From NCBI GenBank assembly GCA_002269645.1, contig NIVC01000512.1, positions 141,967-205,966 of the forward strand: DNA of 64,000 bases, written 5' to 3'. Shown one piece after another: positions 1 through 6,128 of this stretch. Source of the DNA: Macrostomum lignano. Its lineage: Eukaryota. The notes beneath the pieces are model-generated. The model was not told where the DNA came from. It did no database searches and saw only the letters and a program-made list of their open reading frames with translations. The position numbers were made by a program, and so were the translations under genes. Numbering within the stretch: the stretch's first letter is position 1; every line of letters starts with the position of its first letter.

Positions 1-3000
1 ATCCACGCCTACCCCAACCACGACAGCGAGACCGACACGTCCAGGTGAGTTGGGAGCGCGGGAGGGGGCAAATGTGCAAAATTATTGTAAGAAATTAATT
101 GCAAGAGAAACTTTCACTTTTTGCAGACTCCTGCCCACCTGTTTACTGTCTAAACAATGGCACCTGTTCGAGACACGGCCTGCAAAATAAAAGTCTGCAA
201 GTGAGTCCCAGTCTGCCTGCACACAGTGTATCAGTTAGCTTACCTGTCAATTTTTTATCTTTCAGAAGGCGGACTCAGCTCTCGTCTCCCAAGTTAATTA
301 AAACCTGAGCACTCGGTCTGTGGCTACTTCTTGAAGAAAAATTTTATCAAAGCGAACCGCTGCTCGTACAGGGTGTTCGCATATTTTTAGTTTAGCATCA
401 TCTAAGCGAATTAATCTGCAAACTAATCTGCTAATGCAATTTTATCTGGCTTGTTGAGCTGACCGAGTGCTCAAGCTGATAGCTAGGCTGAGAATTAACA
501 CTAGATTTAACAAATTGTAGCGGTTAAAACAAATTTTAGGGGTCTGATTTTAATCTGTCTGTCTGTCTGTCTGTCTGTCTGTCTGTCTGTCTGTCTGTCT
601 GTCTGTCTGTCTGTCTGTCTGTCTGTCTGTCTGTCTGTCTGTCTGTCTGTCTGTCTGTCTGTCTGTCTGTCTGTCTGTCTGTCTGTCTGTCTGTCTGTCT
701 GTCTGTCTGTCTGTCTGTCTTAGTGTTTGTCTGTCTGTTTGTCTGTCTGTCTGTCTGTCTGTCTGTCTGTCTGTCTGTCTGTCTGTCTGTCTGTCTGTCT
801 GTCTGTCTGTCTGTCTGTCTGTCTGTCTGTCTGTCTGTCTGTCTGTCTGTCTGTCTGTCTGTCTGTCTGTCTGTCCGTCTGTCTGACTGTCTGTCTGTCT
901 GTCTGTCTGTCTGTCTGTCTGTCTGTCTGTCTATTGAGTTGCCCAATATCTGTCCCACTGCCCATCATGAGAAGCCTCATTTCTCAGTTCAGCTCCCTAA
1001 ATCTTATCTGTTCGAATCGATCTCTCCCTCCTAAGAGTCCCCCTTTACCTGTCCATCTCCGATTCGCGATCAAATTTCATTTATCGAACTCATAAGCCCG
1101 CAATTCACACTGCACTGTCTGTGTGAGCATTGCAAGTCTGCACGTGTTCACAGCCAGATTTGCCCAGCAAAAATGATTACAATATATATGATTTTTACAG
1201 ATAAACATAGTGCAGTAGCAGCCGTCTATCCTTGCTAACATTGACTCGGTGGATAGATAATTCCAACTGGCCCCAGTGACCAGTTAGTGCTAACCAGTAA
1301 GTGCGCGCGAAAAGTGGCCCTTGGCAGCAGAGATGCAGCATAGATGATGCTGGGCAGATAAGCCAGAGGGGGAACAAGACCGAATGCGGTGGGAAAACTG
1401 GGAAAACATTGCCTAATTAGTAGGCAGCTTGTGTACACAGGTGAGAGGTTCAACTGTGTTGAGTGAGGGGTTCTGGTTGCCTAATTACCCCATGCCAGAA
1501 TTTCTATCGATAATGCAACTTTAAAATTCTTTCTTTCACCAATAATTCCACCAACAATTCTTTCATCGTTAATTTAGTTGTCAAAAGCAGCTGGGTTAAT
1601 TCCGCACCAACACGCATGAGCTTGTTCTTCAAGTGTCATCAGTTCTTTCCTATCTGCCTGCTTTTGACTCTGGGCAAGGGGGGGGGGGGTTGATGCTCGA
1701 GAACTCATCAAAACTGATTGCTAAATGATTTCCCCAAATCTAGACTGGCTGAGCACAAGCAACTTGTGCTGCATCAAACCAGACTCTCTGGTTTGCTGTT
1801 TATTGTTCTCGCTCTCACCCGAAATTCAAAATACGAGTACTTGGTCTTCTTGTCTGTCCCTCCTTCTCTACCCTCATTTCCCTTCTTGTCTTTCCTTGTG
1901 TTGTCTTTCCTTTTCTTGTCTTTCCTTTTCTTGTCTTTCCCTCCTTGTCTTTCCCTTCTTGTCTTTCCCTCCTTGTCTTTCCATCCTTGTTATTTCCTCC
2001 TTTTTTCCATTCCTTGTCTTTCCCTTCTTGTCTTTCCCTTCTTGTCTTTCCCTTCTTATCTTTCCCTCCTTGTCTTTCCCTCCTTGTTATTTCCTCCTTT
2101 TTTCCCTCCTTGTCTTTCCCTTCTTGTCTTTCCCTTCTTGTCTTTCCCTTCTTGTCTTTCCCTCCTTGTCTTTCCCTCCTTGTTATTTCCTCCTTTTTTC
2201 CCTCCTTGTCTTTCCCTCTTTGTCTTTCCTCTTCTTGTCTTCCATTCTTGTCTTTCCCTTCTTTTCTTGTTTATCCTTGTCGCTCCCTTACTCTGCATGC
2301 AGCTCAGCCCAAAGCAGGACAAAGGAAATGTAAAAACCGAATCTCCCTACCCTTGTAATAATTATAAACAAGAATTCTGTTTTCAATGCGCCAATCAATT
2401 GACCTGATCTCTGACCCCACTATCTCTTCCCTAGTGGATTTTCAGTTCATTAATTAACCGAAAAATCAGTGCCTTTAATGTCACCCCACTTAGCTAACAA
2501 ACTGCATCAACGGTATTCCATAACCTTTGTTGCTACCCGTTGCCATGGTAACCAAGCCGCTAGCGGGAGCATCAATAGGCAGAATAAGAAACTATGAAAA
2601 CTTGGCCTGGCTTCTCTCGGATATCATATTTCTCTGAACTTGAGTCAGTTTGTCAGTTGACTTCTTTTTGGAAAAATTCTCAATCTTGTTTTTCTACCTG
2701 ACCCATTGATTAGCTTACTATGGGCAGATGGAGAGTATAGGCTGCACAAAATGGCTACATTTCCTTGAGCTAACTCTCGGCTTCATCAAGTTTATTGCCA
2801 AGCCACCACCACCCCATCCCGCCTCCGCCCAGCTGCTCGCATCCTTACTACGGCGACAGGTGCGAGAAAAACTTGGCGCCATTTCAAAACTACAGCGAGA
2901 CCTGCAAAGGCAAAGTGTTGGGCAAGTGGCAGCGTGGTTTACTTTGCTAATCAGCTCTCATCTGTTAGAGTGGGACATGCAATTTAACCAATCCCATTGC

Positions 3001-6000: not shown

Positions 6001-6128
6001 CGGAAGAGGACGAGGAGTCAGTGGCTACGACCGAGAGCCGGCGGCTTTTCCCCAGGCGAGGGGCGGCTGGTCGAGGCGGCGGCAGCGAGGAGGCGGAGCA
6101 TCCGTCTGAGGCGGCCACTCTGTTCTAG
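1..6128 (+). CDS. Membrane-anchored EGF-domain protein, EGFR-ligand/neuregulin-like (5'-truncated by window; apparent 1-nt frameshift in the EGF exon)
   Basis: Inferred exons <1-44 ([14 protein letters not shown], donor CAG|GTGAGT), 127-200 ([24 protein letters not shown]|GTGAGT), 2833-2909 or 2833-2921 (|[26 protein letters not shown], needs a GC donor), 3007-3106 (TM: [25 protein letters not shown]), 5217-5277 ([21 protein letters not shown], donor CAG|GTAAGC), 5499-6128 (low-complexity tail, ORF 5451..6128). All phases join except for one extra A in the A-runs at 184-192. Confidence 0.7.
554..932. repeat. (TGTC)n microsatellite with a TTAGTGTTT interruption
   Basis: Direct read; intronic in the EGF gene; source of TDRQ/CLSV pseudo-ORFs. 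Confidence 0.97.
1880..2280. repeat. Pyrimidine-rich degenerate ~13-bp repeat (CTTGTCTTTCCCT)
   Basis: Direct read. Confidence 0.85.
2539..2552. promoter_or_regulatory. RFX X-box-like palindrome GTTGCCATGGTAAC
   Basis: Matches the established X-box consensus GTNRCC-N(0-3)-RGYAAC; intronic position, function untested. Confidence 0.4.
3170..5110. repeat. 32-bp minisatellite (AAATGATGATT-AAGGAGTT/AAGAATC/AGGAAAC-(G/AA)ATGATTATC(G/A)CC), about 60 copies
   Basis: Direct read; several unit variants; fills intron 3107-5216. Confidence 0.95.

Follow-up and report, generated by a model that had tools for sequence, protein, structure and literature searches.

Six 3' exons of a probable neuregulin-type EGF-receptor ligand gene, interrupted by one frame break, in Macrostomum lignano

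The window analysed here is a stretch of 64,000 nucleotides (64 kb) from the Mlig_3_7 assembly of the flatworm Macrostomum lignano (GCA_002269645.1, NIVC00000000; contig NIVC01000512.1; Wudarski et al., 2017, PMC5730564). The exact 470-amino-acid (aa) open reading frame (ORF) of an Aa_trans gene in this window is recorded only on NIVC01000512.1. The first 6128 nucleotides most likely carry the six 3' exons of a real, unannotated gene for a neuregulin-type ligand of the epidermal growth factor (EGF) receptor (EGFR). We put the probability of this reading at about 0.85, a value that covers the identity of the gene and its mode of action and leaves aside the state of the copy, intact or disabled, which is weighed separately below.

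In order, the six exons encode a Thr/Pro-rich linker, the EGF module, a stalk with two cysteines, a transmembrane (TM) helix, a basic stop-transfer segment and a cytoplasmic tail of 215 aa (Table 1). The frame of exon 0 is continuous with the frame of the first three EGF cysteines (C1-C3) in exon 1, the final G of the one exon and the AC at the start of the other forming an Asp codon. Exon 1 ends with GTC TGC AA (193-200), followed by GTGAGT, and the residues V-C4-(N) lie in the +1 frame. Exon 2 opens with C TGC TCG CAT CCT TAC TAC GGC GAC AGG TGC, and its stalk part carries an N-x-S sequon together with the first stalk cysteine. The strongest hydrophobic 19-mer of the product is found in exon 3, with a Kyte-Doolittle mean of 2.53. 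Both stalk cysteines (2903-2905 and 3009-3011) are spaced C-x6-C, the GC-AG intron falls between them, and the pair may be joined in a juxtamembrane disulfide loop close to where shedding is presumed to occur. Within the tail, a run of 12 alanines occupies 5679-5714. All donors and acceptors of this model are usable. An earlier reading of the locus from its letters (hereafter the sequence-only reading) had proposed a stalk, a TM helix, a basic segment and a long tail behind the EGF module; each of them is present where it had been placed and is supported by the homologue alignments described below. The same reading had stated that the list of ORFs misses the gene entirely, which does not hold for the last exon, listed as ORF 5451-6128.

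Table 1. Features of the ligand locus, its frame break and tail motifs, and the neighbouring Aa_trans gene. Positions refer to the window; ^ marks a splice junction; P0001 is the M. lignano protein A0A1I8GW14, Pvit NRG-2 the neuregulin-type ligand of Prostheceraeus vittatus.
Feature	Position	Strand	Details
Exon 0, cut by the window edge	1-44	+	Thr/Pro-rich linker ahead of the EGF module; codons from base 2; donor CAG^GTGAGT at 44^45
Intron 0	45-126	+	82 nt, GTGAGT...TTTTTGCAG
Exon 1, EGF C1-C4	127-200	+	preceded by ttttgcag; codons at 129+3k; tblastn match to P0001 at 135-188
A4-T-A4 stretch	184-192	+	A-runs 184-187 and 189-192; simplest site of the frame break
Intron 1	201-2832	+	2632 nt, phase 2, GTGAGT...CCGCCCAG; splits the Asn codon between C4 and C5
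Exon 2, C5-SHPYYGDR-C6 and stalk	2833-2921	+	preceded by ccgcccag; tblastn match to P0001 at 2819-2935
Intron 2	2922-3006	+	85 nt, GC-AG (G^GCAAGT...TTGCAG), phase 1
Exon 3, second stalk cysteine and TM helix	3007-3106	+	tblastn match at 3006-3104, 88 % identical to P0001
Intron 3	3107-5216	+	2110 nt, GTGAGA...TTTTTGCCAG; mostly a 32-nt minisatellite
Exon 4, basic stop-transfer segment, first residue (R)	5217-5277	+	ends in phase 0; matches ARQRRKDWRVFRRKSK of Pvit NRG-2
Intron 4	5278-5480	+	GTAAGC...TCAAG if the in-frame acceptor 5480^5481 is used
Exon 5, cytoplasmic tail, 215 aa	5481-6128	+	GC-rich; TAG at 6126-6128
First tail motif, RTVGTD	5538-5555	+	
Second tail motif	5754-5795	+	
Third tail motif	5823-5858	+	
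Aa_trans (PF01490) gene	39423-40835		intronless, 470 aa

Once a single base is removed from exon 1, the cysteines of the EGF module follow the spacing C-x4-C-x5-C-x9-C-x-C-x8-C. The sequence-only reading had joined position 200 to 2833 to obtain C4-N-C5, and every detail it gave of the exon letters at 127-200 and from 2833 onwards, including C5-SHPYYGDR-C6, is found in the sequence. The join 200^2833 is confirmed by the C-N-C of P0001, and Pvit NRG-2 is colinear across the same region. In a tblastn comparison of the independent protein P0001 with the raw window, three exons were matched in order, by three colinear segment pairs (exons 1, 2 and 3 in Table 1) and nothing more. The signature of the type C5-xxGYxGxRC has one occurrence in the six frames of the whole 64 kb, and the pattern as a whole is far beyond chance. 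A six-frame regular-expression scan of the 64-kb window found no spare C1-C4 or C4-x-C5 exon, neither in the introns nor elsewhere.

A comparison with hidden Markov models of the EGF domain had been suggested as a check on the spliced peptide. The corrected module does match the Pfam EGF family (E = 0.0067), but at 17.1 bits it stays below the cut-off of 21.5 bits. When the corrected module was searched against the sequences in the PDB, the top match was PVFP-5, a mussel foot protein with EGF repeats, followed by mouse EGF (1.6e-4), an EGF/TGF-alpha chimera, epigen and human EGF. Notch and clotting factors rank below this EGF/epigen group, and NRG1 was matched with an E-value of about 0.1.

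To find relatives of the whole product, we searched its spliced, one-base-corrected sequence against 5.8 billion proteins. The only relative was A0A1I8GW14 (P0001), a 274-aa 'Ig-like domain-containing protein' of M. lignano predicted from the older ML2 assembly. The two are 71 % identical over 86 aa (E = 8e-41) in an alignment that spans C2-C6 of the EGF module, the stalk and the TM helix, and that runs through both C-N-C-S at the large intron and GKVLD^CFHRTD at the short one. P0001 carries an immunoglobulin (Ig) domain (I-set/Ig_3, E about 1e-15), a weak EGF match (17 bits) and a TM helix. C-N-C and the residues of the stalk junction are identical in both proteins, and the N-x-S sequon and C-x6-C are kept. 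In contrast to the window gene, P0001 is encoded at a separate locus, at paralogue-level divergence, its model ends at the end of the TM exon and its C3-C4 loop is 10 residues long. Residues 185-192 of this model have Leu in place of C1 (AILPAFYC compared with DSCPPVYC at 129-152 of the window), and this means either an error in the model upstream of the EGF exon or an unpaired C3 in the paralogue.

A second relative comes from the work of Barberan et al. (2016, PMC4914847), whose supplement gives ligand sequences including NRG-2 of the polyclad Prostheceraeus vittatus. In the comparison with flatworm EGF and neuregulin ligands that had been recommended for this locus, the window product and Pvit NRG-2 could be aligned colinearly in one piece over 234 aa, starting at C1 and reaching far into the tail, with 35 % identity (E = 1e-22). 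Using Pvit NRG-2 as the tblastn query, a match at 5538-5795 of the window was obtained in the tail frame (E = 1e-5), and P0001 and Pvit NRG-2 aligned over a range that takes in the Ig domain (E = 4e-21). Common to Pvit NRG-2 and the window product are the spacings C1-x4-C2, C3-x9-C4 and C5-x8-C6, two extra stalk cysteines (C-x5-C in Pvit NRG-2), the pattern RT(x)DRxLT before the TM helix and the stop-transfer pattern RQRR(R/K)D...RR(A/K)(K/S)(R/K) of exon 4. Their tails share the motifs RTVGxD, F(F/A)Y(R/H)PLRS(L/M)PSGES (YxPLRSxPSGES) and E(L/I)WI(R/K)Q, the third of which resembles, by eye, EIWIKQQQAS of Pvit NRG-2. Pvit NRG-2 differs in having His, not Arg, before C6 and in its longer stalk and tail, and it is known as a transcript alone. 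The published 'Macrostomum lignano NRG' (Barberan et al., 2016) is from the same species and of the same class (Ig + EGF + TM), but it is a different gene, the similarity to the window product being not significant (E = 0.2). Judged by these alignments, we regard the window gene as the orthologue of Pvit NRG-2 and a paralogue of A0A1I8GW14. The EGF-TM part of the paralogue found multi-EGF repeat proteins only among 1.84 billion representative sequences, a database search with Pvit NRG-2 gave no match, and a Pfam scan of the 215-aa tail (E up to 10) returned only a chance match to Birna_VP3 and no family over the tail motifs.

Two of the splice junctions required a decision. For intron 2, no in-frame GT donor was found, and there are two GC donors, 2909^2910 (AAAG^GCAAAG) and 2921^2922 (TTGG^GCAAGT), the latter being a perfect match to the GC-donor consensus apart from the C. 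The sequence-only reading had left the choice between them open; its GC donor is real, and the residues of the homologues decide for 2921 and against 2909. Splicing at 2909 would delete GKVL, whereas both homologues keep GKVL / C-x5-6-C, and the donor at 2921 was chosen because GKVL is conserved. The resulting junction, GKVL-D-CFHR, is identical in P0001. GC-AG introns with GCAAGT function elsewhere.

The second decision concerns the acceptor of the last intron, a point overlooked by the sequence-only reading. As exon 4 ends in phase 0, the upstream acceptors 5467^5468 (cacAG^C) and 5473^5474 (tgcAG^A) give an out-of-frame tail, and the in-phase acceptors are the third AG, 5480^5481 (tcaAG^T), or those further down at 5498 and 5507. 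The best acceptor is 5467^5468, and both CAG acceptors are stronger than 5480^5481. All three forward frames are open over 165-259 codons across the GC-rich region 5451-6261, so that ORF length alone cannot choose between them and homology and codon usage are needed. With four other ORFs in the window as the training set for codon usage, the tail frame (codons at 5469+3k) scored -26 bits, compared with -85 for the frame of acceptor 5468 and -92 for the remaining one. A tail in the frame of acceptor 5468 was rejected on this difference and on homology. Skipping of exon 4, which would be in frame with acceptor 5468, was likewise discarded: the exon has its homologue in RQRRKDWRVFRRKSK of Pvit NRG-2, and the score is 20 compared with 63. 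A different solution, the use of acceptor 5468 together with a second one-base shift near 5528 in place of acceptor 5481, aligns equally well with Pvit NRG-2 (61-63 compared with 63 for the 5481 model), but codon usage over 5468-5527 slightly prefers no shift (-0.6 compared with -5.3). On this slight preference, 5481 was tentatively annotated as the acceptor.

The EGF module itself is not continuous in the assembled sequence. The break amounts to one base surplus or two bases short and must lie between C3 (163-165) and C4 (196-198), an interval that contains the A4-T-A4 stretch. As assembled, the frame of exon 0 crosses exon 2 out of frame and runs into a TGA at 3023-3025, ahead of the TM helix, and the copy in this form is unable to make the ligand. 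Dropping one A restores a C3-x9-C4 loop of the same length as in Pvit NRG-2. With the break bridged, no in-frame stop occurs in any exon and the introns are kept, leaving one certain lesion. The sequence-only reading had held that the join needs the removal of one A. Enumeration of all alternative donors near 200 and acceptors near 2833 gave none in phase, so a rescue of the frame without editing was dismissed, and the claim stands: no alternative donor, acceptor or spare exon restores the frame. We also rejected a processed or decayed pseudogene, given the retained introns, the single frame break, the lack of further stops and the usable splice sites. The intact remainder fits only a very young unitary lesion or an artefact, and the choice offered at the outset, a homopolymer assembly error or a disabled duplicate, was kept as the right pair of options. 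Annotation does not help to decide between them. Neither copy of the ligand subfamily is present in the transcript-based NCBI annotation, and since the paralogue is missing as well, missing annotation does not discriminate a real lesion from an artefact.

The history of the assembly bears on both options. Mlig_3_7 was built from PacBio reads with Canu 1.4 and polished by Pilon with Illumina and RNA-seq reads, and non-repetitive blocks with an identity of 95 % or more make up 180 Mb of it (PMC5730564), because the DV1 line has extra chromosomes. The neighbouring Aa_trans gene exists in three near-identical 470-aa copies on three contigs (this window, Mlig006917g1 and Mlig006917g3), all of them with intact ORFs. 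The whole segment, including the ligand locus, is therefore probably present in triplicate, so that polishing reads multi-map.

That the break is real, this copy being a duplicate disabled not long ago or a null allele of an NRG-2-type gene, has in our estimate close to an even chance. The premature stop at 3023-3025 would then probably lead to degradation of the mRNA, and intact twins elsewhere would supply the function. After Pilon polishing with both Illumina and RNA-seq reads, a surviving error in an A4-run is not the default expectation, and the redundancy seen in the three Aa_trans copies, the extra chromosomes of DV1 and the 180 Mb of near-identical blocks relaxes selection. The frame oddity between exons 4 and 5 and the GC donor point in the same direction, all within about 1 kb of coding sequence; however, acceptor 5481 joins the two exons without any sequence change, which leaves one definite lesion, and GC-AG introns of the GCAAGT kind are functional elsewhere. 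In the same way, the absence of an annotated product is matched by the paralogue, which is likewise unannotated. The rest of the roughly 330 codons is open, the motifs shared with the polyclad are kept and the codon usage is coding-like, so decay would have to be very recent, if there is any.

The other option, to which we give a somewhat less than even chance, is that the gene is intact in the animal and that the surplus base at 184-192 is a consensus or polishing indel left over in the assembly. Such an error would be hard to correct if reads map ambiguously among three near-identical copies and expression of the gene is weak. A4-T-A4 is a typical site of long-read indels in a Canu 1.4 and Pilon assembly, although runs of four bases are usually correct after Illumina polishing. 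The locus is triplicated on the evidence of its neighbour, and the remainder of the gene is intact and conserved; on the other hand, the three 1.4-kb copies of the Aa_trans ORF are intact, and indel errors are thus infrequent in the segment. Removal of one base gives a C3-C4 loop of exactly nine residues, as in Pvit NRG-2, while the phase problem between exons 4 and 5 is left unexplained by an indel at this site.

Whatever the state of the copy, the assignment to a ligand family can be compared with published definitions. In the description by Stein and Staros (2006, PMC1618406), ErbB ligands have C4 and C5 separated by a splice site, carry their EGF module beside the TM helix and keep a conserved Arg ahead of C6. 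That the C4/C5 splice site is a hallmark of EGFR/ErbB ligands, as the sequence-only reading had stated, is documented both there and in PMC11686035. In the window gene, intron 1 separates C4 from C5 (TGC AA^...^C TGC) with the consensus GTGAGT...CAG, C6 is separated by 27 residues from the point where the hydrophobic stretch starts, and an Arg precedes C6, with a Gly two residues earlier (YYGDRC at 2843-2863). Barberan et al. (2016, PMC4914847) define the neuregulin type by an Ig I-set domain, a single EGF domain and a TM helix. The whole window contains a single EGF signature and the product has one TM helix, it is related to a listed neuregulin-type ligand (Pvit NRG-2), and both relatives, P0001 and Pvit NRG-2, show the full Ig + EGF + TM arrangement. 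The Pfam Neuregulin intracellular domain, which would mark a vertebrate neuregulin, is absent from the tail.

Compared with known systems, the relatives of the window gene share the Ig-EGF(-TM) architecture with vertebrate neuregulin-1/-2, Vein and SISS-1, and the gene itself shares with them a juxtamembrane EGF module and the G-x-R-C motif. An intron between C4 and C5, as found here, has been reported for Drosophila Vein and C. elegans SISS-1 (PMC1618406, PMC11686035). In contrast, there is no detectable sequence homology to these proteins beyond the EGF fold, and the C1-C2 spacing of the window gene is x4.

On this basis, the product would be a type I membrane precursor that carries a single EGF module 27 residues outside the TM helix and behind a Thr/Pro-rich linker. 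Its Ig domain would be encoded 5' of the window, as the relatives suggest. A second Ig exon of M. lignano, 70 % identical to the one in P0001 and including EPEPVYPERNNIDLTEGRTLIVKCRARGKPNPKIIWMKNSRNLVLGS, forms the end of P0002 and may be the missing upstream part of the window gene. The EGF module would be presented at the cell surface or shed by cleavage in the two-cysteine stalk, and would activate one of the eight EGFRs of M. lignano. The conserved cytoplasmic tail might have an added role in trafficking or signalling.

Several points weigh against a neuregulin-type ligand gene at this locus. With P0001 as the tblastn query, no Ig exon was found in the window; the gene runs off its 5' edge, and the neuregulin type is taken from the relatives. 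The six-cysteine module is complete only once one base has been edited, C1-C3 and C4 lying in separate frames as assembled, and even then its Pfam EGF score is under the cut-off. The C1-C2 spacing of x4 departs from the x7 typical of vertebrate ErbB ligands, and the last intron depends on a weak third AG. The searches made gave no transcript, annotated protein or further database homologue over these exons, and no receptor-binding report for the flatworm NRG-2 subgroup was found in the literature.

In line with some of these points, the gene could be real and its product not an EGFR ligand, that is, a single-EGF membrane protein, for example one acting in adhesion, or a tomoregulin- or mucin-like protein sharing the C4/C5 intron. 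We consider this improbable. Stein and Staros (PMC1618406) do list mucins, meprins and IMPG2 among the proteins that show two of the ErbB-ligand features without proven ligand activity, but the Ig-EGF-TM arrangement of the two relatives is the architecture of neuregulin, Vein and SISS-1. The C1-x4-C2 spacing is typical of generic EGF-like domains, and in the search of 1.84 billion representatives the EGF part matched only multi-EGF repeat proteins; against this, EGF, epigen and TGF-alpha chimeras came above Notch and clotting factors in the PDB search, and both the Arg before C6 and the Gly of YYGDRC are retained. It would be most surprising if the break were real but bypassed by +1 recoding on the A-rich stretch or by editing, with the full ligand still being made: the stretch is slippery-looking and all downstream sequence is conserved, but no stimulatory element was seen, none having been sought, we know of no precedent for such a bypass in flatworm nuclear genes, and the two simpler explanations of the break cover the data.

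Research on stem cells and regeneration uses M. lignano as a transgenic model. In planarians, acoels and tapeworms, the behaviour of neoblasts is under the control of EGFR/neuregulin signalling. Eight EGFRs, compared with one EGF-like and one NRG-like ligand, have been counted in M. lignano (Barberan et al., 2016, PMC4914847). The window locus and its paralogue indicate more neuregulin-type ligand genes in this species than the published two-ligand count, and, if true, several unannotated copies of the NRG-2 subfamily would help to explain the mismatch between eight EGFRs and two ligands. Tiny exons (61-100 nt), introns filled with repeats and an intron of the GC-AG type are the reasons why such genes go unannotated. 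The frame break marks a spot at which there is either an error to be corrected in the reference assembly or the very recent loss of a duplicated signalling gene. This is not a new kind of system, and its relevance is mainly to flatworm EGFR biology and to the curation of the reference genome. A broader and rather doubtful proposal is that flatworms have a distinct NRG-2 subfamily of Ig-EGF-TM ligands, with tail motifs and a two-cysteine stalk kept since the split between macrostomids and polyclads and with several unannotated copies in M. lignano. If so, the conservation of the tail would imply a function of its own, such as regulated shedding, sorting or reverse signalling.

Tandem repeats are frequent in and around the ligand locus. 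Intron 1 contains a (TCTG)n microsatellite of about 95 units at 554-932 and a CT-rich 14/96-nt tandem array at 1877-2268. Nearly all of intron 3 is filled by a 32-nt minisatellite, AATGATGATTAAGGAGCAAATGATTATCGCCA, with about 62 copies and 88 % matches at 3159-5133. A 51/127-nt tandem array at 6306-6836 starts about 180 nt past the stop codon. Further TCTG arrays, at about 20.9-21.3 kb and 35.1-36.0 kb, appear as 'CLSV' or 'DRQT' repeat ORFs in all frames. Elsewhere in the window, the ORF at 13402-13884 (- strand; 161 aa) has several hydrophobic segments and a Cys-rich end and the ORF at 22735-23625 (+ strand) comprises 296 aa; both are without a Pfam match or an annotated product on record. 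The ORF at 55071-55784 encodes three CBS domains (PF00571, E = 2e-23) and is probably an exon of an AMPK-gamma-like gene, a family name suggested by these domains.

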